Assembly (NCBI RefSeq): GCF_021869535.1 | Contig: NW_026262712.1 | Location: 72,230,001 to 72,294,000, forward strand | Direction: 5' to 3' | Origin: Mytilus californianus | Lineage: Eukaryota | Length of the DNA stretch: 64,000 nucleotides | Part shown: positions 1,426-43,026 of the stretch, piece by piece | How the letters are laid out: each line of letters opens with the position of its first letter | Position numbering within the stretch: the first letter of the stretch is position 1 | The notes under the pieces: model-generated | The model's input: only the letters and a program-made list of their open reading frames with translations | Told to the model about the DNA's origin: nothing | The model's database searches: none | Position numbers and translations under genes: made by a program

Positions 1426-1528
1426 ATGTTCAAAATGTGTTCAACGTCTATCTTGATTGTTTTTCTCATCACAGTTAATTCGGTGTCGTTAGCAGATATC
1501 ATTTCAAATGTCAGCTCATCAGCTAGTG
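1426..1528 (+). CDS. Exon 1: signal peptide MFKMCSTSILIVFLITVNSVSLA-DIISNVSSSAS
   Basis: ATG followed by a hydrophobic core and small residues. Donor G|gtaaga at 1529 is phase 1, matching exon 2. Confidence 0.7.
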
Positions 1529-1879
1529 GTAAGACAACCATGCATGCATCTAATTGTTATTGATACTATTGATATTCCGTTGAAGAAACATTTGGTTTTA
1601 ACGGATACATTCAGTAGTGGAAAAGAAAGGGTGTTGATCTTCAAGGCGATGACAATTAGATTCGTATTAATTCATATCAGATATGTTGATATATCTTTTG
1701 TTGTATTTTTTTTACATTTTTAGTACATTTAATAAGTGAAATTATTAAAGATATATAAAAAATATCGATGTAAAATAAATATCGTTTTCAGCGTTGTTTA
1801 CTTAAATTACTTAAATTGTGAAGCGGATAAATGTTTTTCTTTTAAAAAAAACTCATGTTATTTTGTTAAAAAAAACTGT

Positions 1880-2045
1880 CTTTGTTGACAACATATTTGT
1901 TACGTTTAGATGGTGTGTTTTTTAACAATCAATCGGCATTCATATGGGGAACCTAATAGGCTCCTCTTCTTGCCGACAAGAGATTCTCATTAAGAACGAA
2001 AGGAATCTAGCATTAATCTTAACTTCACTTCTTATTTCAACGACT
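1880..2045 (+). mobile_element. Decayed Naiad RT fragment
   Basis: DNIFVTF...QSIGIHMGT..PLLAD remnants. Confidence 0.55.
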
Positions 2046-2351
2046 TTTGATATTACCAACAAGTTTTAATGCAGCTATTTAGAACAGACATAAGTTGTCA
2101 AACAATATATTATAAAAGGGGTCCTAAAAAAATCAAATGCAGGGCACCAAACACTGCATGACGGGGAAATCATATTTAAGGGACGATACACTGCATGACG
2201 AGGAAATCAAATGCAAAAAAACATACACTGCTTGTCGATGAAATCAAATTCAATAAACCATACACTGTATGACGAGGAACTCAAATTTAAGGGATAGTAC
2301 ACTGTATAACGACAACATCAAACAATATGAAATAAGAAATTACATTTTCAG

Positions 2352-2483
2352 ATACAGATTGTTCCGCAAACAACAAGTTCAAATGTAAAAAAACTGGAAG
2401 ATGTATAGCAATTAATTGGAGATGTGATGGTGACGACAGTGACTGTGGTTATGGTGATCAGTCTGACGAACAAAATTGCACTG
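2352..2483 (+). CDS. Exon 2: LDLa repeat 1 ([41 protein letters not shown])
   Basis: Six Cys, the WxCDG and DxSDE motifs, ttttcag acceptor and gtatgt donor, phase 1/1. Confidence 0.93.
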
Positions 2484-2574
2484 GTATGTAAACAAAAAAG
2501 ATTAAATGTCAAGAAGGATGTAGCATTTACTTCTCTCATTATAATGGGTTCTTTCTACATTTAACACCTAGTTA

Positions 2575-2765
2575 CTACTGAAATCACTAGCCAGTGCAGG
2601 TGCACTCGACTCCAATCTTAATTGACTAGGATTGTCAGTTTTCCTATCGAAGGTCGATGGTTTTCTCCGGTCACTCCGGCTATCTCCACCAATAAAAACT
2701 GGCCGCCACGAAATCGCCCAAAAGCGGTGCTTAAAAGTGGCGTTAAAACACCAAAAATTCAAAAA
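2575..2765 (+). mobile_element. V-domain-like SINE
   Basis: GGTTTTCTCCGGTCACTCCGGCTATCTCCACCAATAAAAACTGGCCGCCACG core. Confidence 0.6.
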
Positions 2766-3768
2766 TCAAAAGCATTTAACACCTATTTTGTCTATCAAAT
2801 TAAAGGACTGCTCCAGTAATTTCAAAATTACATTATAAGCACTACTTTATTTTTGACGTATTATGATTGTTAGCAAACTTTGGCAGAACAACAACTGTCA
2901 ACAGGAATTCTAACGACAAAAAGGATGTGAGACCATGAACATAATCAGCAAACTTGCGATGATTTATAATTTGATTTGTTTCATCCAAATCGATTTACAA
3001 GATTTAAACATCGGTAAACTGCTGTTGCCTTAATTTGTATGTATTCACATTTTTATACCCATTTTTATAACGTTAAATTTCTGTTAACTTAAAGTAAAAT
3101 CTCTGTTTTAAATTGAAGTTTTGCATTAATTTACCCATCATACATGTATCTAAATATTGTTATTCAATTTTTACATATCATTGAAAAGGGTTTAAATTAG
3201 TACTTACATAGACGTATAAGTCTAGCTTACAACAGTATGTTGGAGATGGCTTACAAATTGATAGCTCACCTTCATTGATATGAATCTAACATGTTTCTAT
3301 AAGAAAAAAACCTGACGATGAATAAATGAACATGGCGATAACTTCTTTTCACATTTATCCATCTTTTCTTTCCCTTTTTGTACTTATCATAAGTTTCTCT
3401 ATCAGAAAATCGGCATACCAGAAACAGTTTATAGAGTGATCAATTGGTGAAACAATTCGGCTCATTGCAATGGAATGCCAGTAGGTTTCTGCATATTAAT
3501 TTTATACCCACCCAGATCAATGATCGATTTTCATGAACAGAATATTTATATTAGTGTATAAAAAATACCAGACTTTGATTTTAAAACCTAAAAAGGAAAT
3601 TTGATGATTCATTTGTACTGAATATTAGTACATCATGTCAATCAACAGTTCTTTTATTTTTAAAATGTCTAAAACAGATTTCAATCAAATTTGGCGACAA
3701 CCGATACCAATACAAGTTTTCAAATCTGGATAAAAATGTTTGTTATAAATACGTTTGATTGGTTTTAG

Positions 3769-3885
3769 GGAAGACCTGTCCTTCTGGTGAATTCAAGTGC
3801 AAATCTGGCCAGTGTATTCTTATAAAATGGAAATGTGACGGAGAAAAAGACTGTTATGACGGCACGGATGAACTAGAGTGCAATG
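3769..3885 (+). CDS. Exon 3: LDLa repeat 2 ([36 protein letters not shown])
   Basis: Canonical LDLa pattern, AG/GT boundaries, 117 nt, phase 1/1. Confidence 0.95.
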
Positions 3886-4353
3886 GTAATTTCCGAATCA
3901 TGGACAGACTGCGATTATAGAATAGAAATTCAAGAAATATACTAATGGCATTGTTAAATATTGAACTTTGATAATGATTCTTTATCAGGTGGCAATGTAA
4001 ATTCCTCATGTAGTATTTTTGTTTCAAATAGTTACATGTCGCACTTACCTTAATATGTGTAAATTAAAAGGACAAACTTTAACAATAGGTATTTTAAATA
4101 ATGCAAGTAACTGTCTAAAAGCACAGAAGGTAACAGAGAAATAAAGGTAACAGTGAAATAAAAACCGATAATTTCACATTTGAAATAAACGTGGTTATTT
4201 CATTCCTCTGACGTCATACAACAAAAGCCGTTGTCATGACATCGGAGCAAAACAAATTGTGAATGGTTAGAAAAAGATATAGTTCCTTACATTTTCTTCT
4301 TTAATTTCAGAAAAAAAGCCATTTGCAAATGTAATAAAAGAATAACTCATCAA

Positions 4354-4484
4354 AGAATTCAAATATCGAAAAATATTCAACTCGTGACAGAACAACACTG
4401 ATGATTATATCATGCGCTTCGCGCATTCGTCAAATAATGTGTTGTTCGGTCACTCGTTGAATATTTTTTCTCTATTTGAATTCT
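4354..4484. repeat. Palindromic hairpin MITE-like element
   Basis: agaattcaaata..aatattcaac..gaacaacac has a mirror arm; centre atgcgcttcgcgcat. Confidence 0.7.
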
Positions 4485-5401
4485 TCGATTATTTATTCTA
4501 TAAATACTTGAAGTAAGGGTAACACAAGTATACACAGAAATATGCTATTTCTATATATATCGTTATAAATGCTTTTCGAAGTCTAATTTATTCTCGTTCT
4601 GGAGTCATATTGAAATGCAAAATGACCGTGCTCTTTAATTAATGCCGAAATTCAAACAAATTACTTATGCTTGGTAGTCCTTTCCAAACAAACAAACGAA
4701 CAAGAAATAATTCTAACTTTTGTTTTCGTTTTAAGAATGTTAAACGTGTAAAAAAGTGTTATCTTGTGCCATATACGAATGAATAATTTTAAGTGATGAC
4801 ACAATATTAAGTAGTTACTGTTTTTCTGGTGACCTTTTTGCTTTGGTAAAAGTGGTATCTTTGTTTTTTTGTTTTTTTATAGCTAATATTTGCCTCTTGA
4901 TATCCTTATTTTAGATTATAACCAGAAACATATTTTGTTTAAAGCTCTGGAATTAATGATTGATTGGTGTTTCAAGACACCGCCTCAGCACAAACAGGCT
5001 ATATCACAAGGGGACTTTATGCGTTTTGTGGGAAAATATAAATCGTCTTGTCCCACCACCTGACTTTCTTATCTTATTTCTGTCCAGCCATATGCCCACT
5101 TAACATAACTACATTTAAGTGGAAGTTCACTATTTTAACAACAACTTTGATGATGAACTTTAATGTATTTCATTCACGATAAACACATTCAAGTAGATTC
5201 AAATAGTTAGAAATAAAATTCATCACAACAGACTTGAAACTAAAATTTAAATTATGTCTCTTTATATGAATTTGTTAAAGATGACATTCAACCAATTCAA
5301 TATCATAAAACTATCCTCCAGAATTTTCAATTTTCAGCGCTGTCTAAGTTTTAAAATTTATTTTAACTATTTATATCCAGATTGAACATATACAAAAAAA
5401 A

Positions 5402-5478
5402 ACGCCAATAGCCAAATCATTTACTAGTAACATGCCAATAGTCAAATCATTTACTAGTAACATGCCAATAGTCAATCA
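5402..5478. repeat. 30-bp tandem repeat x2.5
   Basis: atgccaatagtcaaatcatttactagtaac. Confidence 0.8.
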
Positions 5479-5734
5479 ATGTGTGACAGATGACATTCCG
5501 TTAATTCAACTAGTGCTAACACTTTGAATACCTGGGCACCTCTACCATATAATTTTAATGCAAAATAATGGACATGTAAATAGCCTGGTCACAAAATAAA
5601 CCAATATGCATCTTTTAGCAAAACTTTTATTTATGCAAATGTTTTGGCAATATATATTTATAAACAGTAATATTAAAAGTACTATATACTGTCAATGTAG
5701 GCCTACTAATACAAGTTATGCTTGGGGCTAATTC

Positions 5735-6150
5735 TGTTTAAATGTCTTTTTAATCGAGTTAAGTATTTCAATTGATATTTTATAGTATGTCTATTTTTGT
5801 TGTAATGTTACACTATTGTCTCGATTTAGAGAGAAGGTTGGCGCCTGTTAGAACGTTTTAATTCGTTGATTTTTATGCACCTGTCCTAAGTCAGGAGCCT
5901 GTTGTTTAGTGGTAGTCGTTTGTTGGTGTGGTTCATAAGTGTTTTTCGTTTCTCGTTTTAATATAGATTAGACCGTTGGTTTCCTGTTTGAATTATTTTA
6001 CACTGGCCCTTTATCGCATGCTGTTCGCTGTGAGCCAAGGCTGCGTGTTGAAGGCCGTACTAAAAACCTATCATTGTTAACTTTTTATACATTGTGACTT
6101 GGAAGGAGAATTGTCTTATTGGAACTCATACCATATCTTCTTATTTATAT
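5735..6150 (+). repeat. Solo Naiad 3'/pLTR-like module (diverged)
   Basis: CCTGTCCTAAGTCAGG core and the GAGAGTTGTCTCATTGG..ATACCACATCTTC tail, as at 11145-11592. Confidence 0.75.
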
Positions 6151-6484
6151 TTATATAGAATTATTTGCAAAAACATCGAGTACTTCGAGTGTAGTTAGTG
6201 GTATCTGTCATGCAGTTAATGATATGCATACAACTTAGTATATTATCCAGTGAAATTTGATGATTATCAACTATTATTTATTAAAACAATTCATCTATAT
6301 TTAAGAAACTCCATGCTATCTTACTTAGCCAATTTCTTTCACATCTGTATTTGAATATTCTTTAAATTGCCAAAACTATGGTCAGTTTACGTTTTAGATT
6401 TCTTCTAAATAATGTTTCGTCTATATATACTTCAAAGCTGTCATTAGATTGAAATATAAAATACTCGATAACAAGGCATTTAAT

Positions 6485-6932
6485 TGTTCAGTGTATGTTT
6501 ACTGGTGTTAATATGTCCTTTGATTGAGTTAAGCCATTTCAGTTGATATTTTATAGTGTGTATTTATATGTTGTGATGTTACACTATTGTTTCAGATAAG
6601 GGTGAAGGTTTGGTACCATTAAAACGTTTAAACCCTCTGCAATTGTTTGCACCTGTCCTAAGTCAGGAATCTGATGTACAGTAGTTGTCGTTTGTTGATG
6701 TGGTTCAGAAGTGTTTCTCGTTTCTCGTTTTTTATATAGATTAGACCGTTGGTTTTCCCGTTTGAATGGTTTTACATTAGTAATTTTTGGAGCCCTTTAT
6801 AGCTTGCTGTTCGGAGTGAGCCAAGGCTCCCTGTTGAAGACCGCACTTTGACCTATAATGGTTTACTTTTATAAATTTTGACTTGGATGGAGAGTTGTCT
6901 CATTAGCACTCATACCACATCTTCTTATATCT
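6485..6932 (+). repeat. Solo Naiad 3'/pLTR-like module, near-identical to 11145-11592
   Basis: Direct visual alignment over about 450 bp shows few differences. Confidence 0.85.
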
Positions 6933-7457
6933 ATATACTTTTAGCTAACATATGTTTTCATGAAGTGTTATATGGAGATAAGACAGTCCAATCAATATTA
7001 GGAATATATGTCAAATTATCTTACATGAAAATTATCATACCATATTGTAATTTCACATTTATTTTACTGAAAATAACATGTTTTAATTCAAACTGATGTT
7101 CAAACTGAATTTTTAGAGGAAAAATAGTATGAAAACTTAGTTTGAATCTTTAGCAATAATAATTCAAATAACTCTCTACAAAATTGAAAGAATTTAAGAA
7201 ACTTGTTTATAACAGCCATGAAGTTGAATGAAATTAAAATTGTAAGTTGTAAGATTTTTGACCAGTTGAATAGTTTTATTTGATGAAATACATTGTAATT
7301 AGGTCAGAATTTTGAATTTTGAATGAACTGCAAATGGCGGAGCAAGCAAGTCAGGGTTTTAAATTTCTCTCAGAAAATAAAAAAAGCATTAGGTTAGAAT
7401 GTCCATTTTATTGAGAAAATACATATTGTTAAAATCATGCTTGTAATTATATACCAG

Positions 7458-7574
7458 ATAATCCAACATGAGCTAAAGATGAAATAAGATGTTCTAACGG
7501 CAAATGTTTGACATCAAAATGGTTATGCGATGGTGAAGATGATTGTGGTGATAGAAGCGATGAACATAACTGTA
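7458..7574 (+). CDS. Exon 4: LDLa repeat 3 with TGA at Cys1 ([37 protein letters not shown])
   Basis: LDLa motif intact apart from TGA 7469-7471. Acceptor ccag, donor gtaagt. Confidence 0.9.
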
Positions 7575-7719
7575 GTAAGTATATGTATGTATGTAAACTT
7601 AGTAGATGACCTTACATTTTGTAGCTGTTCTTTATAACCAGATTCAAAGTGTCAACGTCTGTTCAAAAACCTTTAGGAATTCACCATATCAGAACTAAAT
7701 TATACTTCATTCCATTATC

Positions 7720-8225
7720 TAAACTTTATTTACTATTTCAAGAGGCCCAAAATACTTCCGTTATTGATTCTAATTCTGTTTTGTATAGATTTGTTGCAAT
7801 AATCATGGAAATTGCTAACCATAGACTATTGAAGCCCGTATTAACTACATCCAAAAATGAGGAAAAACGTAATATGTTAAGGTAGAATTCGCCAATAAAG
7901 GTTTAGATGCTATTAATATTAGCAATATTTCCACCAGAAATCTGTACAAAAAACTATAATAGTGGAATTAACTATTTTTGGAGAGTAAAAAATTCTTTGG
8001 ATGTTTTCGATAAATTACGTGCTTTTGATGGTCTTTTTGATTCTGTTGACAGTTTTGATTTTCTACTCTTTACACTACATTTCCACACAATCTTATCAAA
8101 CAAAAATTTGACTATTTAATTAAATGGTCGTTTGGTAAATCTGAATGCAAATATATTTGCTGCAACTCATTTAAAGCCTTCTTCTCTAATGAGAAAGGTA
8201 AATATGCTAGAAAATAATAGCAGAC
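7720..8225 (+). mobile_element. Rearranged Naiad (Penelope-like) fragments
   Basis: EIANHRLLKPV...KR linker fragment is fused to an RT fragment (GINYFWRVKNSLDV...DSVDSFDF). Confidence 0.75.
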
Positions 8226-8269
8226 ATCCAGTATTATGCAAACTGGGTCAAATACCAATAAGTAAATTA

Positions 8270-11200
8270 TATGCTATTTTTCTGGAGTGTGATCAAATTT
8301 CTTTTTTTTTGCCCAATGTATGAATACACCCGTATTATTACAGCCTTTTGTCATCATAGGCTATTTCCTAGTATCGATAAACCTGAAAATCATAAACGGC
8401 ATTTTCTTAAATTAAAATATATAAATAGAGGTATTGATTTTATTAACTTATCTAGTATATTCAATGACTCTACCATTCAAAGCCAAATACCTCCATATTT
8501 TGATAATATAGAACCACCTATTATTTCGTATTCTTATAAAAAAAAACCAGCAGAAGTTTCATTTTTAATTATACGTCAGTTACATCAGACGTCAATATAG
8601 AAAATAATGTTCCTTCCACTTGAGACAGTGAAACATCTAGTTTTAGATATGTTCCTTATGGTCATGTCCTTACAGGATACCTCAACATCGTCGAAGACCG
8701 TGAGGTCATAACTTTTCTTAAGAAAGGACCGAAATATCGTCCTCCATCTAAAATAGATTGGAAACAGTGTCGTCAGGTCATTAAAGACGCTCTGTCTGTC
8801 TACTGTAAAAATTGTTGTAAACGTGAAAAATCTGATAAAAAATCTCTAGACAGTTATTTGAATAAAATTATGAATACTGTTAATATTCGTATATCTCATT
8901 TTGAAAACAATTCTGAAATTAGTAATAGGGTCCATGATATTCCCATTTCTAAAATAAAAAATAAACTCCTAGTACTCGCAAAGCGGTTAGTGTTCGTACC
9001 GGCAGACAAAGCAGCAAACAATGTAGTGGTGGTGTGACGCATATACTATACGGAAGTTCTCCAAAACGAAATTACAAATTCATCTACATTCTGGTCCGTA
9101 CGCTCCACAGAGAGTCAAATTGTTAACAAGCATATCATTGCCACTATCCAGCTTAAAGCCTCTTCCGAACATTTGAAAGTTCCTACATTGTACTGGTTAC
9201 CTAAATTACACAAAAAAACATTTAAACTTCGTTTCATCTCCGCAACTAGTAAGTGTTCTACTACCAATCTATCAGTGCTTCTAACTACCTCCCTTACTAC
9301 TATCAAAGAACTTGTTATCAACTTTTGTAATAAAGCATATGAAAATATTGGTGTTAATTATTTTTGGAGTGTTAAAAATTCTTTACAGGTTTTAGATAAA
9401 ATACATGCTTTTGATGGTCCTTTTAATTCTGTTGACAGTTATGATTTTTCTACTCTCTATACTACACTTCCACACAATCTTATCAAGAAAAAGTTTTCAT
9501 ATTTAATTAAATGGTCTTTTGAAAAATCTCATTACAAATTTATTTGCTGTAACTCGTTTAAAGCCTTTTTCTGTAACGCAAAAGGAAAGTATGCTAGATA
9601 CACTTACTGGAAATGTGAAGATATGATTGACTCTTTAAATTTTCTACTGCACAACATATATGTACGTTTCGGCGATAAAGTGTATCGACAAGTAGTAGGT
9701 ATTCCTATGGGCACTAACTGCTTTTTTGATAGCAGATTTATTCCTGTATTGCTATGAATCTCAGTTTATTACCAAACTCAGTAAAGACACGTCATTGTTA
9801 CATTTGGTTGATACATTCAACAATTCCTTCCGTTATCTAGATGATATTGTTTCGTTAAATTATCCAGAGTTCTCTAAATATACTACCGAAATTTACCCAA
9901 AAAGAACTTATTTTAACTAAATCTAACATAAACAGCAGTAGTTGTCCTTTTCAAGATTTGGACATTTCAATCTCTAAAGGAAAACTCCATACTAAAATTT
10001 ACGACAAAAGAGACGACTTTTCATTCCCTATTGTTAATTTTCCATTTTTAGACGGCGATGTTCCTTTGGCTCCATCATACGGTGTTTATATATCCCAACT
10101 CGATCGTTATGCCCGTTTGTGTAGTGATGTCATAGATTTTAACGAACGTAATCAATGCATCACTGGTAAATTATTAGGTCAGGGATTTCGTTACCATAAA
10201 TTACGTAAAACTTTTACTAAATTCTTTCATAGATACAAAGACTTGATTAGTAATTTCGGCTGTACCTGTAGACAACTGATTAAAAATGGTATTTCACATC
10301 CTAAATTTTACGGTAATATTGTACTTAAAGCGCAGAAATCACTATGTGATCCGTGTAAACTCATCGAACCTTTAAACAAACTTATTAGTAAAGGTTATCT
10401 TACCAATGTTGTAATCAGATCTTTGAATATAGTTTACATTGGCACTAATATCGATTTTGTCATCAGCAAATTAAAACATAACTAAATTTGTATTATTTTC
10501 AAACGGGATGTATAAAGACACACCCACGTTTATTTTGATCTATAAAGAGATTAACTCCTAATTAACTAGCCTACTGCCTGTCGATACATTTATTTTTAGC
10601 ATTGCACAAGTCATGTCTTCTTTGACTGTCCATGACGTTAAAATACTAAATCCCTGGGATGTGTTTTAGTTGATTGTAGTCTCAGATTCATGATTTTTTA
10701 ATATTAATAGTTTTTGGCTTTTAACTAGCTGTCAGTAACTGCGAGTACTCTCAAATCGTACTTTCTTGTTTATGACCTGTTGATACTAATTATAATGCTT
10801 TTTTGTTATATAATGTTATTCATGGTTATATCTGGTCTATATACCAGCTTTGATAAGTGTTTGGTATTACTATAAATTTTCACTTCTTCGTACTATGAAC
10901 ATCAAAAATTATTTATTTTGTAAAAATATTTCCTTTCTCTATTTGAACTGTACACGTATACATAACAACAAAATTATTTTTTTTACCTGTGTTTAAAGTG
11001 ATTGCAAATGGCTGATATTTTTGTTCAAGTATATTGTTTTTCTTAAATTGTTTAACATTTCACAGCGGTATAACAGGTTACTTTAATTATTCTTCCCTTA
11101 GTTTATTTCTTTTGTATTTGCATTGTATCATATATCAAATTATTTGTTCAGTGTATGTTCACTGGTGTTAATATGTCTTTTGATTGAGTTAAGCCATTTC

Positions 11201-11592
11201 AATTGATATTTTATAGTGTGTTTTTCTATGTTGCGATGTTACACTATTGTTTCAGATAAGGATGAAGGTTTGGTACCATTAAAACGTTTAAACCCGCTGC
11301 AACTGTTTGCACCTGTCCTAAGTCAGGAATCTGATGTTCAGTAGTTGTCGTTTGTTGATGTGGTTCATAAGTATTTCTCGTTTCTCGTTTTTTATAAAGA
11401 TAAGACCGTTGGTTTTCCCGTTTGAATGGTTTTACACTGGTAATTTTTGGGGCCCTTTTTAGCTTGCTGTTCGGTGTGAGCCAAGGCTCCCTGTTGAAGA
11501 CCGTACTTTGACCTATACTGGTTTACTTTTATAAATTTTGACTTGGATGGAGAGTTGTCTCATTGGCACTCATACCACATCTTCTTATATCT
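8270..11592 (+). mobile_element. Naiad Penelope-like retroelement copy 1: 5'-truncated, Sec-type (2 in-frame TGA plus SECIS), with 3' pLTR-like module
   Basis: Linker GHVLTG..KGPKYRP, then RT motifs LYWLPKLHK, DFSTLYT, GIPMG, RYLDD and DKRDDFSFPIVNFP. The ORF ends at 10485 with no C-terminal GIY-YIG. Frameshifts lie at about 8540, 9720 and 9900. Confidence 0.9.
10609..10695 (+). promoter_or_regulatory. SECIS element (form II) of Naiad copy 1
   Basis: AUGAC 10632-10636, a 10-bp helix II (GUUAAAAUAC/GUGUUUUAGU), unpaired AAA 10648-10650, mini-stem UCC-cug-GGA, UGAU 10671-10674, and a lower helix GACU/AGUC plus UCAUG/CAUGA. Confidence 0.85.
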
Positions 11593-13190
11593 ATAGATAT
11601 ACTTACCGGAGGTGTGATGAGATGATTGAAGCTGTTAATTTTCTCCTTGATAATATTTATGTACGTTTCGGCAGCAAAGTTTATCGACAGTTGTAGGTAT
11701 TTCTATAGGCACTGTTTGCGCCCCTTTAATAGCAGACTTGTTGTTGTACTGTTATGAATCACAGTTTATGACCAAAATCAGTTAAGACCCGTCTAAATTG
11801 CATTTAATTGATAAATTCAACAATACTTACCGTTATCTTGATGATATTTTTTCGTTAAATATTCAAGAATTTTCTCAATATACTGCCGAAATTTACCCAA
11901 AGGAACTTACTTTAAATAAATCAAATTTAAACGGTAACAACTGTCCTTTCCTAGATTTAGATATTTCGGTTTTACACGGGAAACTCCACACTAAAATTTA
12001 CGACAAAAGGGACGATTTTTCGTTCCCTATTGTTAATTTTCCCTTTTTGGATGGTGATGTTCCTTTGGCACCATCTTACGGTGTTTATATTTCACAACTC
12101 GTTCGCTATGCCCATGTCTATTGTGACGTTTTCGATTTTAACGAACGTAATCTATGTATTACCGGTAAATTATTAAGCCAGGGATTTTGTTACCACAAAT
12201 TACTTAAAACCTTTACTAAATTCTTCCACAAATAAAAAGATTTGGTTTTGAAGTTTGGTTGTAAATGTAGAAAACTTATTTCAAACGGGATTGCACATCC
12301 TCATTTTTACGGCAATATTGTTTACCGTGCCCGGAAATTTAGAAACGATCCTGGTAAACACCGATCCTTTAAATAAACTTATTCTAAAAGGTTACCAATT
12401 CAACACTGCAATTAGATCATTAAATATTGTTTTTATTGGTACTAATATTGATTTTGTTATCAGTAAATTAAAAGCAAACTAAATATTATTGTTATATACA
12501 TATACACATTCATGGATCTACAATCTGTCGATACCTGTATCTTGGCATTGCACAAGGTCATGTTTTTCGCTGACTGTTTATGACGTCTTTACACTAAATC
12601 CATTGGATGTTGGATATGTACGGATTGATAATTTAGTCTTAGATGCATGATTTTTTTATTAGTTGTTAGTGGCTTTGAACTAGATGTCAGTAACTGCGAG
12701 TACTCTCAGATCTGTACTTAGTGTCTTTTTGTTGTTTGGATGTACAAGTACCCGGCCACGTCCACTTGTTTTTGTAGTATTTGTATTTTTATCCATCTGA
12801 TGAGTTAAGCCTCTTTCAACTGATTTTTATAGTTCGTTCTTATGTTGTACTGTTATACCACTGTCCTAGGTTAGGGGGATGGTTGGGATCCCGCTAACAT
12901 GTTTAACCCCGCCACATTCTGTATGTATGTGCTGTCCCAAGTCAGGAGCCTGTAATTCAGTGGTTGTCGTTTGTTTATGTGTTACATATTTGTACATAAA
13001 TTAGGTCGTTAGTTTTCTCGTTTGAATTGTTTTACATTGTCATTTCGGGACCTTTTATAGCTGACTGTGCGGTATGGGCTTTGCTCATTGTTGAGGCCGT
13101 ACGGTGACCTTTAGTTGTTAATGTCTGTGTCATTTGGTCTCTTGCGGAGAGTTGTTTCATTGGCAATCATACCACATCTTCTTTTTTATA
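11593..13190 (+). mobile_element. Naiad copy 2 (3' RT half, SECIS, 3' module), head-to-tail after copy 1
   Basis: ORFs 11798-12235 and 12255-12482 are homologous to the copy 1 C-terminus (…VISKLKAN*). Confidence 0.9.
12557..12650 (+). promoter_or_regulatory. SECIS-like element of Naiad copy 2
   Basis: AUGAC 12580, AAA 12596-12598, UCC-auu-GGA and UGAU 12626. Helix II GUCUUUACA/UGUACGGAU has one mismatch. Confidence 0.7.
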
Positions 13191-20946: not shown

Positions 20947-20954
20947 GTAAGTTC

Positions 20955-32520: not shown

Positions 32521-32972
32521 GTAAGAATATTTTGATATTGTTACTTTTTTAAAAAATGCAGTTTTCTCAATAATACAGTTTGCACTTGTTATATAGTATA
32601 TTTATTTATATGGATTAATTGTTTGAAATACGATTGAAATGTTTGGCGTTCAAAAAAGACCAAGTAGCAAACGACGAAAAACAATACAATTAACAAAAGA
32701 AAATGACGAATAGACAATTAACAGTAGCAAATTAGAAAAACTTAAGATCGAGCAATAATTAATACCAACCCCATCGACCCCGAATTCGAGGTTAACTTAC
32801 AATCCCCCGCGAAACATGTATATTTGTTTGTTTATATCTTCATTCTTTGTGTCCGATGAAATTGCAATACTGAAGTATATCAGCCAAATTATTTCATTAT
32901 GTTTTTAAAATCCATGCCCTAATGTTAGTTGATCCGTTTGAATAAAGAATCATGTATATCTGTAAGTTTCAG

Positions 32973-33116
32973 ATATGAATACAGATTATCCGCCAACTGT
33001 AATGAGGACAATGACAACACCAGAGAGAACTGTAACCGGTGACATAAACATAGTAACTACACAATCATCGGCTGAATCCCAACCAACATCCATGAAGACA
33101 CTTAGATCTGATGAAA
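32973..33116 (+). CDS. Exon 14: Thr/Ser/Pro-rich linker resembling the LDLR O-linked sugar region
   Basis: Open 144-nt frame after a tttcag acceptor, phase 1/1. The donor (gtagaa) is weak. Confidence 0.65.
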
Positions 33117-34160
33117 GTAGAATATTATTATAATATAAAGTTATTTTTTTTGTGTTAAAAGAACAAAAGGGGGAATTTTAGTTTATGTAAATGAACTCGA
33201 GAGAACAATCACACATCATATACGAATCGATGTCAACATAATTTCTTATGGTTGATTGCACAAAAATCTAGACAAGTTATGAATAAATCTATTGCTATAT
33301 CCAAGGATCTTCCATCAACACTGTATTCTTCAAAATTAAACAACGTTCAGACTTATTTTTATACGAAAATCAAGAAGTATTATAAATCTATCAATATAAA
33401 ATGTATATCGTTATTCTTCAATAATCAGTGGGATTTCTGTATTTATAATCTGTGTTGTACGATAAATGAGATATCTGATAATCTTGATAAGATATCTTAT
33501 AAGATATCTTATAAACTTTAGAATATAAAGGATATAAACTCTTTTAATAAAACAGAATTGCAAAAACTTCCAAAATATTCATATCTTTGAGGTCTCGGCA
33601 TTTTATATAAGTGTGAGTATGGACCTTACCAAAAATATCCTTTGCTTTAAATTGTCTTGTACAAAGATGACGATTTAAGGAAAATTTTTCTTTTGTTTAT
33701 GCCATCTCTCATGCCTATCTTTCTTAAATACAATGGTGAAAATTGACATATTTGGCCAAATATATCTGTTTCGTTTTATTTAGGACATCACAAGTTCTCT
33801 TCTAAAGTGCTCAGATTATGTCTTGCTATGCAAAAATCAATTAATCAATGAAACTAACATCAGTTTAAACGGCTTGATATTGCAATTACAGGGACCGAAT
33901 TAGTTTTCTTAGCATTCTGCCTTCCATTCTTGAACAAATACATGTTTGTTTTCTGTTACCAACATCATAGTTTCATAATTATAATAACCATTACAACTAA
34001 ATATATATCCTTAAATACTGACTCTTGAATTCACATGCCTTAATTAATCTCGCAAACGTGGAACCGCTGAAATTACTTTTTCATTTTAAATTCGATAAAG
34101 TTTACGTTTCAATCACGACTATCTGGTAACAATCATATTTATATATATATATATATTTAG

Positions 34161-34280
34161 AACTCACGATCAAATCAACATGCGAAAATACATATGAGTG
34201 CAGTGGGAAACTTTTATGCATAGATGGTATTTGTCAGTGTTATGAACAGTTTGTTTGGAATAGAACTAATTGCGTCAAAA
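34161..34280 (+). CDS. Exon 15: EB-like Cys-rich repeat (CENTYECSGKLLCIDGICQCYEQFVWNRTNC)
   Basis: C-x5-C-x5-C-x4-CxC-x5-W-x4-C spacing, AG/GT boundaries, phase 1/1. Confidence 0.85.
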
Positions 34281-35203
34281 GTAAGATTTATTTTATACAC
34301 TAGTGAAATAGATAATGGGACCAGCAACAATATACTATTTTCCATATATATATGTTTTTTTTTATAATAGAATGTGATTGTTATTGGTTGTTTTATGTCA
34401 TCTCATACAAGTAATGTTTTGTTATTTGGAATGTTCAGTCTACTTCAAGTAATAATATTAAGAAAATGTCTTGTGTTTTTTTTTATATATGTGTATTTGT
34501 AAGCAAGAAAACACAGCAAGCCAATATTTCAAACAACTTTTGAACATTTTCATCTTGTACAAATGCGTGAATTTCCACCACACAGAAGTCTTTGACATTT
34601 GCGCATCTTGTCGCATGGTTCACATGAGCCAATCTCCATATAGGGGGAAAAGCTACTTGAAACATAAATGAGAAAATAAGTAAGAAAGTGAATAGCTGCC
34701 TTAGTGTTGTTTTGTTCTTATCCATTTTTCTCCAAACAAGTAAAACGTATTGCTAACAGAAAAGTTACCCTGATGAAAAGGAAGAGAAACAATATTCTCG
34801 CTAGGATATAGCATATTGCCTTTATACTGGGATGAATCTATCATTTTGGATGTTCCTAACCATTAAAAAAATCGGTATGTTACTTGTCATCCGTCAATCC
34901 TTGTTGCCAGATTATTGAACAGTTTATCCTATGTACAACTATGAAACTTTGTTTTTAAACTAAAATAATTTCCCAGATAGCAAGAATATGAAATAAGCTC
35001 GACCCTTAAACCGCACATGATCCCTTCCCTTTATCACGACCCCAGAACCATAAATCATGGATCCACGTCTGATAAAAAGAAGTCATTCTCAATTTAATAT
35101 GGTAGTTTTATTGTTGATTGTTCCACATATGTAGTCAGTTTTGCTAATTCTGATTTCTTTCAAGTTTTGCCTATCAAAGCTTCAGTATTTATATTTCATC
35201 CAG

Positions 35204-35323
35204 AGAAAGAAATGAGCAAAGTTTGTACAGATTCAGTAGAATGTCAAGACAATTTAGACTGTATAAATAGCAGATGCAGTTGCAAACGCTCAACATATTG
35301 GAATGGTATAAGCTGTGCCCGAA
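35204..35323 (+). CDS. Exon 16: second EB-like repeat (CTDSVECQDNLDCINSRCSCKRSTYWNGISC)
   Basis: Same Cys/Trp spacing and same 120-nt length as exon 15. Confidence 0.88.
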
Positions 35324-35743
35324 GTATGTTTTCATTGGTACTTTTATTAATAGTTTTTTTTGAAATAGTTATTTATATAAAAAAGAGTCTGAGTGAACTT
35401 ATGTATTTGATGTATGGTGAATATCTTATGCAAAGCTGGAGACGGTTACCCTGTCAAATCACACAGTCTCGCTCTATTTAGAGTTCGTGTGTTTTCCCGC
35501 TGGTATTTCCTTTGGTTTGTATATTTTTTGAAAACGAATAACTGGCGCTATAACGGAATAACGAGTTTTAAGTATCGGTTAACATATGTTGCTACTTATT
35601 TGAACAAGTTTAGAATTGGAGCAATTTAAAATGTTCAACACAATTATCACACACGCATATACATACATTTATAACTTTTAAAACATTTTTGTTTAATACC
35701 CAGCCATTTTGTACTTACAATATATCTATGAAACTTTTTGTAG

Positions 35744-35871
35744 AATTCCCTTCTGAATGTGAGGATATCTCTAGTGATAAGGATGGTGTATATTTGGTCT
35801 ATCCTAAAGGCAAAATGACGTATCGTAAAATATTAGTTTACTGCATCACGAGCGGAAACAAGAAATGGACA
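35744..35871 (+). CDS. Exon 17: FReD start (PSECEDISSDKDGVYLVYP...VYCITSGNKKWT)
   Basis: Matches the fibrinogen-C P.DC...SGVY.I...VYCDM...GWT pattern, phase 1/0. Confidence 0.9.
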
Positions 35872-36428
35872 GTAAGTATGAAAATAAAACAAATAACCTT
35901 ATTCAATATCATGAATATGGCAGCATGTTTTCAGAAAATAGGATTTGTTTTCTTTCGAACAATGTTTTATATGTCCGTACACTTTCATGAAATTCGTACA
36001 TTGTAATTGAGTTAAAAAAAATGTTTGCAATCAAAAACTATTAATCAAGTCACAGAACATTGAAGCTTTATCTTAAAACATTCAGAATCTATAAAGATAA
36101 AAGTTGAAAAATGAAAAATCACAAATGATTATTTTGTTCAATATCAACGATGTAGCAAAGTTTAGTATCCTTAAAGGACCTAAAACATTGTAGGCTGTGT
36201 TTTTTTTTGTTATTCTTTCCCTCAAATTAAAAATAGATTAAAAAATAATAATCGAAATACTAACACCCTCAATAATTTAAAAAGTGGACAGGTTGATGAG
36301 ACCTTATAAATAAAACTTTTAACCGTTTCCAATTAGGGTTACACTCATTTTTGTTTTTTTTGTGTGTTTTTTGGTATGTTTAATTTGAGCACACATATAT
36401 TTACCTTTTATTTTTTCTTTGCATACAG

Positions 36429-36525
36429 GTAATACAGAAGAGAACTGATGAATCTGTGGACTTTTACAGAACATGGTCGGAATATTCAAACGGATTTGGA
36501 AGAGTTGATAGAGACCATTGGCTAG
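36429..36525 (+). CDS. Exon 18: FReD (VIQKRTDESVDFYRTWSEYSNGFGRVDRDHWLG)
   Basis: Classic VIQRR.DGS.DF.R.W.EY..GFG....WLG motif. Confidence 0.93.
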
Positions 36526-37379
36526 GTCATTACTTTTTCATTAAGAGTTTAAAAAATACGGCAACGTAAACTTCTTCGAGTGAAGATATATATACTATGG
36601 TGTCATGATGACGTGGGCTAGGCCTGATTTAGCTCATGGTAAGATTAATCATGTGCAACCAACAGTTTTACCCGAAAAGACATGTCTTCCAAATCAAAAG
36701 GAGAAGGACTAATTTGGCCATAACATGAAATGTATTTCAAACTGACTCTAATTTCAAGAATCAAATGTTGAATATAAAAGCTAAATGAAACAAATACTGT
36801 TCTAGTTTACAATACAATACACCCTTTAATGCGCTACACAGACACAAAGAATAAATAGAAATCTTCGCGAAATCGGGACTTTTTTGTCTTGCATTTGATT
36901 AAAAATAGCATAGTGCACATCAGTTGCCCAAAAGTTATTTACACCTTTAGTTGTTTATTGTACTTATCAATCCACTGACAACCCCCCCAACCCCCCCCCC
37001 CCCCCCCCAAAAAAAATAAATATTTGACCGCCGCTTGTGACTTATTTTTATTTAAGCCGAAATGTTCCAGCAATCAGCCTATTTTGCTAAAAATCTTTAA
37101 ATTCTCCAAATGACGTCATAGTCAATTTCTGTAACCAAGGCTTGCTTTATATTCATATTTTAGAATGTCTTCCTTCTCAAATTAATAAAAAATTATCGGA
37201 TTGGTTATGACTGTTGTTCATATCTAGATATAAGAAGATCCTTATTTTTGCAGCTTCTGCATATCAACCTTAATTCCAAAAAGTAAAATCACAAAAATCA
37301 AAAATACTGAACTCCAAGCGTGAAAAACCCCTTGGAAAATTAACATAAAATTGTATAGATGCAAAAATATAATAAACAA

Positions 37380-38232
37380 GTCTAAGTTGAAAACAACGTT
37401 CAAGCCTACATTAGAAAAATACGTGTGCATGTAAAACAAATTTCTTGGTAGAGGGGTCTAAATACAGCACACACAACATTTTCTAAAAGACAAAAAAAGT
37501 GAAAAAGTATATTTTCACAACACGCATTTGACTAAAAGGTCAAACAAATAATGTTCTTAAACCCTGCTGACTGCTATGGCGATTGCCAAATAAACGTATC
37601 ACTAGATGTAACAAAATGGATCTCAATTATGAATTAAATACCAAAAAGAAAACAATAAACTTGCAGAAAAGATGGTATACCGCAAACATGAGGTGCACAA
37701 ATTTGTACACCATATCCGGATTTCGACAATCAATGTCTCTTCAGTTATGTTAGGAATCGAAACGGTATTTAGAAGACCATAATATTTACCTCAATTTAGG
37801 ATAGACTCTTGACTTTTGAAGGGTCGAAATAGAATAAACAGATCATATGAACTAAAAGGAAAATATAATAACAAGTCTTATTTGAAAACAACTTTCAAAC
37901 CAATGATTTCATTGGATAAAAACCGCAAATTTATATTTGTGCATGCAAAACAAATTTCTTGATAGAGGAGTCTAAATACAGCACACACAACATTTTCTAA
38001 AAGACAAAAAAAAAGTGAAAAAGTATATTTTAACAAAACGCATTTGACTAACAGGTCGAACAACTGATGTTCTTAAACCCTGCTGACGACCATGGCGATA
38101 GCCAAATAAACGTATCACCAGATGTAACAAAATGGATCTTAATTATGAATTTAATACCAAACAGAAAACAATAAATTTGCGGAAAAGATGGTGTACTGCA
38201 AACATGACGTGCACAAATTTGTACACCATATC
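37380..38232. repeat. Two tandem copies of a repeat of about 340 bp; third copy at 54126-54452 abuts (TA)n
   Basis: gcatgcaaaacaaatttcttggtagaggggtctaaatacagc… is shared by all three. Confidence 0.8.
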
Positions 38233-38392
38233 ATATTTACCTATATGTGGTTGTGATTATCAGAATAAATATAAATATTATTTGATAAATTAATATTTTT
38301 GTTAGCTCTTTTTCGAATGCAAGGGACTGAAAAGTTCATATAAGTATTTCACATAGTGGTGTACTAATTTTCCTTTTTTCAAATTATTTCAG

Positions 38393-38557
38393 GAAACGAG
38401 AATATTTACCGTTTATCCCAAGATGGCACACATGAACTAAGCATTGTCTTAGTAGATTGGGAAGGAAATCTAATGGAAGCTAATTATTCTCAATTTTCAG
38501 TAAATAGTGAAGAAGACAACTACTCACTCAGTGTGTCAGGATACTCGGGAAACGCAG
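38393..38557 (+). CDS. Exon 19: FReD (NENIYRLSQDGTHELSIVLVDWEG...ANYSQFSVNSEEDNYSLSVSGYSGNAG)
   Basis: Fibrinogen-C motifs, phase 1/1. Confidence 0.93.
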
Positions 38558-39870: not shown

Positions 39871-40029
39871 ATTAGATAAGTTTTAGGGGTACAGCAGTCA
39901 TCATTGCGTTATAACCTTAATAACTACAAAAACAAACAAATATATCAACATAGAAAACCAGAAAGGCACATAGACGAAGCACATAAGCAACAAGTAAAAC
40001 TGCGAGCTACTGTTCACTGATGATATCCC

Positions 40030-40607
40030 CGCCGAAATATTTCGGTAAACAGGAAGTTGTTGAGTGATGAATCTGAAAATGCATCACACGGTATAGCTGA
40101 CTTATATAAACCCTGAAACCAAATTTCAGAAATCCTTGTATTGTAGTTCCTGAGAAAAAAACTGTGTGACGAAAATTTTCAACTTGGCTATCATGTGTAA
40201 AATGATACAAGTGTTCGGTAAACAGGAAGTTGTTGAGTGATGAATCTGAAAACGCATCACACGGTAAAGCTGACTTATATAAACCCTGAAACCAAATTTC
40301 AGAAATCCTTGTCAAGTAGTTCCGGAGAAAAATGCGACAAAACTTTTCAACTTGGCTATCATGTGTAAAATGATACAAGTGTTCGGTAAACAGGAAGTTG
40401 TTGAGTGATGAATCTGAAAACGCATCACACGGTATAGCTGACTTATATAAACCTTGAAACAAAATTTCAGAAATCCTTGTATTGTAGTTCCTGAGAAAAA
40501 TGCGACGATAATATTAATGGGACGGATGGACTAACGGATGGACAGACGGATGGATGGACAGAGAGGTAAAACAGTATACCCCCACTTTTTTTAAAGCGGG
40601 GGTATAC
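40030..40607 (+). mobile_element. HINE/pearl-like non-autonomous element: 3 core repeats of about 170 bp, an ACGG microsatellite and a 3' palindrome
   Basis: Units at 40044, 40217 and 40385, then (GGAC/GGAT)n and tatacccc…gggggtata. Confidence 0.75.
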
Positions 40608-40769
40608 AAACGAAAGACAAGAGTACAAAAATTTACCATAGCACAATAACACAATGACGAGATGTATAAGTTCCGATCCACGTCAAATGGATATATAACA
40701 AAAAGACTAAATAGTAAAAGTAATAAGTTACAAAGACAAATAAAAGAACACTATAATACGTTATTAATA

Positions 40770-41290
40770 TGATAAACAACGTCAGTACCTAGAATCTATA
40801 CTTCAAGACCATCGTGTATTTTTGTGAAGTGGATACGGAGTATTTATCAACAAGGTATTGGTAACTTCCGATAAACGTTTTTAGAAAAAGGACGAGACGT
40901 ATTTCGACCTACCCCTGGTTCATCAAATTTCTACTCAGACACTGTTGACGTTTTATAAAGTCTGAGTAGCAGCTGCAAACTCTTGAATACCGAATAAGTT
41001 GGGAAATGTATATCCCATATGCAGGTGAACTTTGTATATTACTACTAAGGTGGGGGAAATTAATAATTTAAAAATTTAAATCGTCTCGTCTCGTTTGTCA
41101 TAGATTCTGGTACTGAGATGACCGTGTATGTCAAAATCGAGGTATGAGTCTAAATATAAGCCAGAGGAAGCCGTGTCTGTTGTTTCTTTAATTTTGGCAG
41201 GATATATTAATGGAACCCCATCAGAAAATTTGGATTGTTAATGGAAAGAACATCATCAATATATCTGAATGTGAAATTAAATGATCTGTC
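40770..41290 (-). mobile_element. Naiad RT 3' fragment, same subfamily as 38895-39185 but opposite strand
   Basis: SFNFTFRYIDDVLSINNP and AYGIYISQLIRYSRVCS. Confidence 0.8.
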
Positions 41291-42429
41291 TGAAGGAACT
41301 CCGAGTCCTATCAAAATAAGAAGAAGTCGGCAAGAAGAGACGCACAGTTCGTTCTCATAGGAATGACGACAATTTGCTGACAAAAAGTCTACCTTCATAT
41401 TCAACAAATATGTTGTCAATAAGAAACTCCAGCATACTGCTCACTTGTTCCTCTGTGTAGCACGTTTTACCTTTTTGTTCACTATTAACAAAATATGCCG
41501 TATAGTATCCTAATGTAATAAATTTATAGCGTATGCTACCATTTTAATGTTGAAAAGCATTGTGTATTATTTCTTTTAGATAATTTTTCAATTTCATATG
41601 GGGAATGGTGGTACCAGGGTTGAAAAATCAAACGTTTTGATATAACTAATTTCAGAAAAAGATCAAGATCTAAATTATCCAGAATTAAGTTCTTTAGATG
41701 TGTTTAGAATCCACATATGGTTAATACCACTATGCGAGTAAACAGTTTCACAATATTGGCTAAGCCTTACAGATACTTTGATAGTGTAATATTATCTATT
41801 CATAAAAGGAAGTATGGGCTAACAGCTACACTGTGAGTTATTATCTATATATAAGTGGATGGTATTGGCGAACAGTTGCTCTGGTAGTGCAATATATAAT
41901 ACTAAATAAGATGACTGCTTTGTGGTCGCTTTTCCGTCTTCCTTATGAAATCAATAAATCTGGCTCTCTGCCATAAAGGAAGTATGCAAATTGTAGTTTT
42001 TTATCCTCTCAATAATTGTTCAATTTGGGTTAGTTTGGGCAAAAATTCGGTAACGAAACCAATTGTTGGTGTCCTTTCCGTGATTACCATCGATTTCAGA
42101 TCGTATTCACTTTCAAATTTCCTACTTTGTTTCAAGTCACAAATATTCTTTCTGAATACATTGAAAGCAAAAAATATATTAACCAATTGAGTATGGCTGT
42201 TGAGTAATTTGTAAAATTTAAAAAATTTCAACAATCCTAACCTTTTTTGTATTCCTTATAATTAAATCATAAAATCTGGCATTTAGACTGGCATAAAAGT
42301 CCAGATTTTGATCTCTTTTCAGGCCAAATTTCATTTTCGACTGTCATTTCCTAAACTTTCTTAAATGTGTTTAAATATGAGAATGGTCTTCTTATGAATT
42401 TTATGTTTGATTCTCACATTGGTCTACTT

Positions 42430-42800
42430 TTCAGATGATGGTGTGGGCTAACATCTGCTCTGATATTGCAATATCTATTTATCAGGGAAATGAGCTAACA
42501 TCTGCTCTGATAGTGCAATATCTATTTATCAGGGAAATGAGCTAACATCTGCTCTGATATTGCAATATCTATTTATCAGGGAAATTATCTAACATCTGCT
42601 CTGATAGTGCAATATCTATTTCTCAGGGAAATGAGCTAACATCTACTCTGATAGTGCAAGATTATTAATATATCAGGGGATGGTATGGGCTTAAAGCTGC
42701 TCTGATATTTTAACATAACATATTCATAAGCAAATGTTATGGGCTAACAGCTGCTTCTATAATTTAATCTTATCTATTGATCAGGTGATGGTATGGACTA
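42430..42800 (+). repeat. 47-bp tandem array running into the exon 20 splice acceptor
   Basis: Unit starts at 42484, 42531, 42578, 42625, 42675, 42728 and 42783. More degenerate units lie at 41740-41910. Confidence 0.85.
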
Positions 42801-43026
42801 CCACAACTCCAAATCATTTTATACTAAAGACCGGGACAACAGGAATGGGTGTGCTGTCAACAGACATGGTGGTTGATGGTATGACAACTGTTACCAAGCA
42901 AACCTAAATGGAAGGTATAATGGGACAATAAATGAATCTGGAAAATATACAGGACTAGTATGGTTTGAATGGAAAAGTGACTATTCCTTAAAGGCAACGC
43001 TGATGATGATCAGAAGGAAAGAGTAA
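42785..43026 (+). CDS. Exon 20: FReD C-terminus with TGA at the GGWWY Trp (DGMDYHNSKSFYTKDRDN..CA..HGG*WYDNCYQANLNG...SLKATLMMIRRKE*)
   Basis: TGA 42874-42876. The conserved motifs continue past it to TAA 43024. Confidence 0.92.

Follow-up and report, generated by a model that had tools for sequence, protein, structure and literature searches.

Does the mussel Mytilus californianus carry a gene that begins as a low-density lipoprotein receptor (LDLR) and ends as a lectin, and can such a gene still make its protein? The question is raised by a 64,000-nucleotide stretch of the M. californianus reference genome (contig NW_026262712.1; hereafter the window), which is AT-rich (G+C approximately 32%), free of N runs and bivalve-like in appearance. 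A sequence-only reading of this DNA had joined 20 exons into a single frame with no intervening stop, encoding an LDLR-type ectodomain that ends in a fibrinogen-related domain (FReD) instead of a membrane anchor. Very likely, the locus is the M. californianus orthologue of a Mytilus chimeric gene, in which an LDLR-type ectodomain is followed by a tail of EB modules and a FReD. The copy in the window is, with high probability, a transcribed pseudogene or null allele, because the longest open reading frame (ORF) left in it (542 amino acids) has no signal peptide and its FReD is truncated.

Twenty exon-like open pieces are found on the + strand between 1426 and 43026, at or near the coordinates of the earlier reading. 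In order, they encode a signal peptide, LDL receptor class A (LDLa) repeats, an epidermal growth factor-like (EGF) module, a calcium-binding EGF module, a YWTD propeller, another EGF module, a threonine-rich linker, two EB modules and a FReD. The Pfam families follow in this sequence: five Ldl_recept_a matches (2336-2488, 3759-3917, 7472-7606, 15542-15673 and 18186-18362), cEGF, EGF_CA, Ldl_recept_b (in the exons at 24.5, 25.1 and 29.4 kb), an FXa_inhibition-type EGF, two EB matches and Fibrinogen_C over four exons. The YWTD exon at 23.1 kb has no Pfam match and was placed by alignment to the M. galloprovincialis orthologue P0151 (see below). Domain matches and coordinates thus bear out the module series that had been proposed, with its five LDLa repeats and 20 pieces. 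With splice sites set as in the orthologues, the concatenated 20-exon model is 2961 nucleotides long, a length that is in frame, and has AG/GT borders on all exons except the fourth LDLa exon. The exons concerned in the fusion are all of phase 1-1.

Relatives were sought with phmmer, using the third FReD exon against a library of 1.84 billion proteins, followed by a word search with the C-terminal 300 residues of the top match. This match (94% identity) is P0001, an 801-amino-acid protein annotated as "very low-density lipoprotein receptor-like [Mytilus edulis]". It has LDLa, LY, EGF and EB modules and a complete Fibrinogen_C domain (positions 4-219 of 221; E-value: 8.5e-52). Further fused orthologues are encoded by M. 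galloprovincialis (P0151, 928 amino acids, "LDL receptor-like isoform X1"), M. trossulus (P0152, 974 amino acids) and M. coruscus (P0155, an ab initio model with retained introns). A fused transcript (P0153/L004) is found in run SRR13891809 as a 2002-nucleotide intron-less contig; an A-run in its third YWTD exon is longer by one A, possibly a contig error. The loci of M. edulis (L001), M. coruscus (L002) and M. galloprovincialis (L003) are colinear with the window. The sequence-only reading had not recognized the combination from any named gene, but it is already annotated in five Mytilus species, where NCBI names the fusion LDLR-like, VLDLR-like or LRP8-like.

The orthologues vary in their repeated modules. 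The subset of LDLa exons differs between species: the first LDLa exon of the window is present in L001 (82% amino acid identity) and is skipped by the P0151 model, while the fifth is present in L002 (96.9% nucleotide identity) and in neither L001 nor L003. The LDLa repeats of P0151 keep the acidic DxSDE calcium cage, and three of the four keep the Trp. EGF-A is constitutive in P0001, P0151 and P0152. As P0152 has three EB modules rather than two, the EB exon is duplicated in M. trossulus. The linker exon is duplicated in M. edulis and M. galloprovincialis, and one copy has decayed: this second copy (L001 24187-24333, L003 25660-25806) is the one most like the window exon and contains an in-frame stop, and the annotated proteins of both species use a downstream copy (L001 24804-24902). 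One M. edulis protein, P0188 ("VLDLR [Mytilus edulis]", 82% identity), was considered as a closer paralogue lacking the FReD and was rejected, because this older ab initio prediction covers the same locus, is joined to a transposase lying upstream and ends after the linker.

Does such a gene belong to the core LDLR family? The LDLa cluster of that family is present (five Ldl_recept_a matches in the window, where two of the five exons are damaged, and four in P0151), and the EGF-A, EGF-B, YWTD and EGF-C modules are correctly ordered, the EGF-A of the window bearing a TGA. No transmembrane segment follows the stalk. In P0151 and P0152 the single hydrophobic segment is the signal peptide, and the window has no transmembrane exon after the linker. 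The NPxY motif is absent from P0151, P0152, P0001 and P0154 (the RefSeq protein of the window locus), and the window contains no plausible exon for it. The search of the + strand 3' of the linker, which was continued past the FReD to 64 kb, found no transmembrane or NPxY exon. Hydrophobic ORFs in this part were considered as the missing anchor exon and rejected, being repeat-derived or due to chance and having no LDLR-like tail. Because both the transmembrane segment and NPxY were looked for and are absent, the gene is not a core LDLR family member in the receptor sense.

The two halves are expressed together. Four M. californianus RNA runs were checked over 32300-38300, three as contigs (X1, X2 and X4) and X8 as raw reads. 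The contigs of X1, X2 and X4 lack the introns and are therefore RNA-derived. A single 1605-nucleotide contig of X2 is made up of the end of the last YWTD exon, 32364-32517, 32964-33116, 34167-34280, 35204-35323, 35744-35871 and 36429-36526, followed by the start of the exon at 38393. X4 has a single 911-nucleotide contig with the same exon series from 32416 on, and X1 has the same exons in two contigs, with the break between the linker and EB1. The joints 32520>32967, 34280>35204, 35323>35744 and 35871>36429 are found in the RNA contigs, all with GT..AG borders, and one of the few X8 reads (first mate on the minus strand) also shows 35323>35744. At the low RNA depth of the fusion region (about 4-7), at least two samples show a single RNA in which the LDLR half is joined by splicing to the EB/FReD half, and the gene is spliced correctly wherever RNA was read, despite the lesions described below.

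Three junctions had been singled out beforehand for an RNA check, and they fared differently. The junction 35323-35744 was seen directly. The joint 33116>34161 is absent from the joint table and was deduced from six unaligned letters in the single contigs of X2 and X4; a repeat beside it (34126-34166) was skipped in read placement, and the exon start is set at 34161 because exactly six contig letters separate the aligned blocks. The joint 38557>42785 is implied by P0154 rather than by reads. The RNA contigs and the + strand search together uphold the claims that the LDLR half is spliced to the EB/FReD half and that no transmembrane or NPxY exon is present. A read-through past the EB2 donor (35324-35478), which would encode a hydrophobic stretch followed by KK, was considered as an anchor-like extension and rejected: every RNA contig splices at 35323, and the stretch is probably a chance product of an AT-rich intron. 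At 33046, in the linker exon, an AAA run is one A shorter in the X4 contig. At this low depth a contig error is possible; if real, the deletion puts the LDLR half and the FReD half of the X4 individual in different frames.

The frame itself is not open, contrary to what had been claimed. It is interrupted by three TGA codons (at 7469, 20868 and 42874), the last of them inside the final exon of the sequence-only reading, and the acceptor of the fourth LDLa exon is lost. The TGA at 7469-7471 stands at the first Cys of the third LDLa repeat, where tblastn and codon reading both give T-(stop)-A against T-C in P0152 and in P0232, a canonical VLDLR-like protein of M. edulis. The TGA at 20868-20870 in EGF-A replaces the conserved Cys of CDHIC, encoded by TGT in M. 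edulis and M. galloprovincialis DNA. At the fourth LDLa exon, M. edulis and M. galloprovincialis have CTAG|GT; in the window the dinucleotide is AT and the AG is lost. The TGA at 42874-42876 replaces the first Trp of GGWWY, so that the frame reads ...NRHGG, TGA, WYDNC...; the codon is TGG in M. edulis, M. coruscus, M. galloprovincialis and transcript L004. Compared with intact orthologues, the window copy therefore has the disabling changes expected of a pseudogene or null allele, and it also has private changes at invariant positions (W>R in FWTDW and C>Y in EB1).

The lesions affect both ends of the predicted protein. Fibrinogen_C matches lie on both sides of the 42874 TGA, which falls between profile positions 169 and 174, so that a domain of about 220 residues is cut at approximately 170 of 221. 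In the C...GGWWY..C bracket the first Trp codon is TGA and the second Cys lies past the stop. The window copy is thus not an intact FReD protein; it behaves as a fusion of LDLR-type and FReD modules. Because two of the nonsense codons lie in constitutive exons, this copy cannot make the secreted adaptor that had been proposed, and most likely it makes no functional protein.

The RefSeq annotation of the locus is explained by these stops. P0154 ([quoted passage not shown], 542 amino acids) matches the window exons without a difference. It begins with MSKKQ in the second YWTD exon, at the ATG that comes first after the 20868 TGA, and ends with the ...RHGG that precedes the 42874 TGA. It lacks the signal peptide, the LDLa repeats, EGF-A, EGF-B and the last 50 residues of the FReD. 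RefSeq already treats the locus as a single gene, but P0154 is the remnant ORF of a disrupted gene, lying between two premature stops, and should not be treated as a receptor.

Four other explanations of these data were weighed against a transcribed pseudogene or null allele. The gene might be functional in M. californianus, a full secreted LDLR-EB-FReD protein being the normal product and the stops being private or rare alleles or assembly errors. All 49 codons past the 42874 TGA are open, and their translation equals that of M. coruscus over the 48 codons compared; because these codons are still open and still match, the change at 42874 is recent. Spliced transcript is present in three samples, Mytilus genomes have high heterozygosity and presence/absence variation, and words containing the TGA are absent from X19, X20, X5, X6 and the RNA runs. 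That absence is uninformative, however, since two words were sampled and the local density of single-nucleotide polymorphisms is 1-3%. The two sampled 31-mers with the 42874 TGA occur in contigs of X18, the probable source sample, only; this argues against an assembly error and says little about other individuals. Four separate lesions on one haplotype, a sister species (M. coruscus) damaged by different lesions and the one-nucleotide linker deletion of the X4 transcript also count against a functional gene, which we regard as unlikely. A second explanation, that LDLa3, LDLa4 and EGF-A are skipped to give a shorter secreted receptor that is still useful with its C-terminally truncated FReD, draws on the fact that all three exons are multiples of 3 nucleotides and of phase 1-1, on the different LDLa exon subsets used by orthologues elsewhere and on the general rule that nonsense-mediated decay usually spares transcripts whose stop lies in the last exon. 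It is improbable: EGF-A is a constitutive part of P0001, P0151 and P0152, the RNA-guided RefSeq ORF begins after the EGF-A stop and would not be the longest ORF if a transcript with exon 1 skipped EGF-A, and the GG(stop) truncation costs the protein its second P-domain Cys and the 50 C-terminal residues of the fold, which can be aligned up to the end of MFAP4.

It is highly improbable that the window contains two separate genes, one LDLR-like and one encoding a FReD, with the joined RNA arising by read-through or as an assembly chimera. Logan contigs can join neighbours, and the 33116>34161 joint lies beside the skipped repeat and was deduced from six unaligned letters. Against this, two independent samples each have one contig with precise exon joins and a continuous frame, and M. 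edulis, M. galloprovincialis, M. trossulus and SRR13891809 have an annotated or transcribed ORF with the same fusion. Neither a signal-peptide or coiled-coil exon like that of the stand-alone EB-FReD protein P0303 nor a transmembrane or NPxY exon after the linker was found in the window. Recoding of the TGA codons, by selenocysteine or otherwise, would leave the frame open, and two of the three TGAs do replace Cys codons. The third replaces Trp, though, the orthologues use TGT and TGG, and an Rfam scan of the whole window gave no match at gathering score, for SECIS or any other family. TGA is the one stop codon that lies a single substitution away from a Cys codon; the pattern is accounted for without a special cause, and recoding is exceedingly improbable.

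Some observations weigh against the reading of the window copy as a transcribed pseudogene or null allele and of the M. coruscus copy as damaged. Intact M. californianus alleles may exist, since a single haplotype of one individual was examined and just two TGA words were sampled; RNA contigs of other individuals show 1-3% divergence from the window. Skipping of the damaged LDLa3, LDLa4 and EGF-A exons, all symmetric (phase 1-1), would preserve the frame. In M. coruscus, a 1-nucleotide deletion in FReD exon 3 comes from an older assembly and could be an error. Of the changes private to M. californianus and M. coruscus, 25 are non-synonymous and 9 synonymous; on the other branches the counts are 62 and 45, a difference that is not significant (Fisher p=0.11) and does not demonstrate relaxed constraint.

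A transcribed pseudogene or null allele in the window is nevertheless matched by damage in M. coruscus. There, a clean 1.7-kb deletion without Ns, corresponding to window positions 20188-21886, removes EGF-A and the first 44 nucleotides of EGF-B. In the M. edulis species complex the gene seems to be whole, and in two Pacific species, M. californianus and M. coruscus, it seems to be damaged. The earlier reading had proposed a search for intact orthologues in other Mytilidae; these are annotated in M. galloprovincialis, M. edulis and M. trossulus, while the M. coruscus gene carries lesions.

Selection on the chimera was estimated by the Nei-Gojobori method from the aligned codons of eleven exons (all from the first YWTD exon to the last of the FReD, except the linker) that are shared by the window, the three loci and the transcript of SRR13891809. 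The ratio of non-synonymous to synonymous substitution rates (dN/dS) is 0.33-0.39 when the californianus/coruscus pair is compared with the edulis/galloprovincialis pair, and about 0.3-0.4 in each half of the gene. These between-clade values show that purifying selection acted on both halves of the chimera once they had been fused. For M. californianus against M. coruscus, dN/dS is 0.81 (LDLR half, 1.07; EB and FReD half, 0.55).

Both halves have identifiable relatives. The closest non-fused relative of the LDLR half is P0232, which is 57% identical over the EGF-propeller region and has eight LDLa repeats, a long Ser/Thr stalk, a transmembrane segment from approximately residue 860 and the motif FDNPVY (NPVY at residue 899). 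The five LDLa exons of the window resemble individual P0232 repeats (including 1 and 8) and follow their order. Nothing in the window corresponds to the remaining stalk, the transmembrane segment or the NPxY tail of this paralogue. For the tail, the closest relative is P0303, a 344-amino-acid "MFAP4-like" protein of M. galloprovincialis in which a signal peptide and a coiled-coil-like segment precede one EB module and a FReD; it came to light in a database search for transcript-derived M. californianus protein fragments across the FReD TGA, of which there were none. Its gene lies approximately 240 kb from the fusion gene on the same chromosome. The EB-FReD part of P0303 is 84-93% identical to the tails of the fusions (91% to that of P0151), and no counterpart of its N-terminal 94 residues was found in the window. 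Two other Mytilus proteins with EB repeats and a FReD, P0157 and P0158, are more distant (51-55% identity).

The likely parents are therefore the canonical VLDLR-like gene and the nearby coiled-coil-EB-FReD gene. In the proposed model, a duplicate of a VLDLR-type gene would have kept its LDLa, EGF-A, EGF-B, YWTD and EGF-C exons and the start of the Ser/Thr stalk. EB and FReD exons would have been copied in from the neighbouring lectin gene, and the remaining stalk, transmembrane and NPxY tail exons would have been lost. The paralogue comparison fits an origin by exon shuffling or segmental duplication. The earlier proposal that phase-1 exon shuffling replaced the anchor agrees with the paralogues and with the phase 1-1 exons, while the order of events and the mechanism are deduced from present-day sequences.

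How does the fusion compare with known systems? It shares the ectodomain plan and module order of the core LDLR family (VLDLR, LDLR, LRP8 and P0232) and differs in lacking the transmembrane segment and FDNPVY/NPxY, in having fewer LDLa repeats, the set of which varies by species, and in ending with EB modules and a FReD. Soluble forms of LDLR family members are shed or alternatively spliced ectodomains that could act as decoys or carriers. Like the fusion, they are LDLR-type ectodomains without an anchor; in the fusion, however, solubility is predicted to be encoded by the gene, and a second recognition domain stands in place of the anchor. The stand-alone Mytilus EB-FReD proteins (P0303, P0157 and P0158) share the EB and FReD modules and differ in having a signal peptide of their own and no LDLR-type domains, and P0303 also has its coiled-coil-like segment.

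The FReD of P0151 aligns end to end with those of MFAP4 (7zmk; E-value: 1.2e-44), ficolin-2, FIBCD1, tachylectin-5A and angiopoietin-like proteins, and is closest to MFAP4, ANGPTL2, tenascin-R and ficolin-2. From the MFAP4 alignment, P0151 has both the calcium-site motif (DRD) and the P-domain disulfide (Cys...GGWWY..C); MFAP4 has a His after the second Cys where P0151 has a Tyr. In contrast to vertebrate and arthropod FReD lectins, the fusion has no collagen-like or coiled-coil region before the FReD. Shuffling of FReD cassettes is common in molluscs, and the principle is not new. Mosaic mollusc proteins such as the gastropod fibrinogen-related proteins (FREPs) with immunoglobulin superfamily domains resemble the fusion in their C-terminal FReD, often preceded by EB or EGF-like modules, and in their unrelated N-terminal domains, but in the fusion the N-terminal partner is a complete LDLR ectodomain.

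Within the sensitivity of the protein-library, paralogue and ESM Atlas searches, the pairing of an LDLR ectodomain with a FReD was seen in Mytilus only. The ESM Atlas search returned ordinary LDLR-type clusters and none with both families, and, being confined to clusters of at least 50 members, says little about rarity. The literature search found no paper on an LDLR-FReD fusion; one paper that contains both Pfam names lists them for different transcripts. The architecture is already public under automated LDLR-like names, without a paper having been found. The features of the window copy are listed in Table 1.

Table 1. Exons of the LDLR-EB-FReD locus in the window, with the evidence for each
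Feature	Position	Strand	Evidence and remarks
Exon 1, start codon and signal peptide	1426-1528	+	First 27 residues as P0151 N-terminus, with one change at residue 27; donor GT, phase 1
LDLa exon 1	2352-2483	+	Ldl_recept_a E-value: 8.6e-9; resembles repeat 1 of canonical VLDLR-like paralogue
LDLa exon 2	3769-3885	+	Pfam E-value: 1.8e-14; 78% identity to first LDLa of P0151; AG/GT, 117 nucleotides
LDLa exon 3, damaged	7458-7574	+	Pfam match begins at profile position 5; TGA 7469-7471 at Cys1
LDLa exon 4, acceptor lost	15549-15665	+	Pfam E-value: 6.6e-12; TAT for TAG at 15546-15548
LDLa exon 5, borders uncertain	18199-18330	+	Pfam E-value: 2.7e-6; resembles P0232 repeat 8
EGF-A exon with premature stop	20821-20946	+	tblastn CDHI(stop)NENG against CDHICNENG; TGA 20868-20870
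Calcium-binding EGF (EGF-B) exon	21841-21987	+	Pfam EGF_CA E-value: 1e-6; 78% identity to P0151
YWTD beta-propeller, four exons	23175-23343, 24602-24826, 25081-25196, 29456-29737	+	Ldl_recept_b; equals P0154 from LY2 on
EGF-C exon	32365-32520	+	FXa_inhibition E-value: 1e-5; covered by RNA contigs of X1, X2 and X4
Thr/Ser-rich linker exon, stalk remnant	32967-33116	+	No Pfam match; between EGF-C and EB1 in single RNA contigs of X2 and X4
EB exon 1	34161-34280	+	Pfam EB E-value: 9.7e-7; RNA contigs align from 34167
EB exon 2	35204-35323	+	Pfam EB E-value: 5e-5; both flanking joints in three contig sets
FReD exons 1-3	35744-35871, 36429-36525, 38393-38557	+	Fibrinogen_C on exons 2 and 3; no match on exon 1
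Last FReD exon with premature stop	42785-43026	+	TGA 42874-42876; ancestral stop TAA 43024-43026

The introns and flanks of the gene contain other elements. Retroelement insertions with long ORFs (for example 9038-9754, 9859-10482 and 11786-12232) occupy approximately 8200-14900, and these three ORFs have no Pfam match at an E-value of 0.01 or below. The part of the window that holds these insertions (3752-15476) has no counterpart in the M. edulis locus. In the intron between FReD exons 2 and 3, positions 37419-38232 consist of two tandem copies, 87-88% alike and spaced 514-516 nucleotides, which Tandem Repeats Finder missed (the period exceeds 500) and a separate repeat search found. This unit has a summed depth in the thousands in RNA-derived contigs and shows backward joints of 511-514 in raw RNA reads; it looks like an abundant transcribed tandem or satellite-like family with longer arrays elsewhere. 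On the minus strand, 48170-56610 holds a neighbouring gene with EGF-type exons and weak matches to EGF_CA and teneurin-EGF at 48170-48472, and the equivalent M. galloprovincialis neighbour encodes a 7616-amino-acid protein with faint fn3 matches. Upstream of the M. edulis fusion gene, also on the minus strand (L001 1-504), lies a FReD gene encoding 428 amino acids with Fibrinogen_C and a faint three-finger (Toxin_TOLIP) match.

What might the intact protein do? The orthologues of M. galloprovincialis, M. edulis and M. trossulus are predicted to be secreted, with no membrane anchor. The idea of a secreted adaptor thus survives for these full-length proteins, whose only hydrophobic segment is the signal peptide, and fails for the window copy. 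The proposed model is as follows. The LDLa repeats would bind, in a calcium-dependent manner, basic patches on LDLR-type ligands, and a glycan or acetylated target would be the ligand of the C-terminal MFAP4/ficolin-like FReD, with the propeller, EGF modules, stalk remnant and EB modules serving as a spacer. Such a protein would act as a bridging, opsonin-like humoral adaptor, linking a glycan or acetyl target to a lipoprotein or vitellogenin-like particle, or as a soluble decoy. A humoral bridging or decoy role would be the likely one. Unlike P0303, the fusion has no oligomerisation segment before the FReD, which may limit avidity.

Taken together, the data may tentatively be read as a Mytilus-specific secreted VLDLR-ectodomain-EB-FReD chimera that was kept by purifying selection as an adaptor or decoy in the M. 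edulis complex and is now being lost independently in M. californianus and M. coruscus; this full account is quite possible. The gene is a case of birth and decay in which both candidate parents can be identified, purifying selection acted between clades and disabling lesions arose separately in two sister species. Secretion and a dual function of the intact orthologues, if true, would make these proteins a candidate link between the handling of lipid particles and pattern recognition in bivalve haemolymph.

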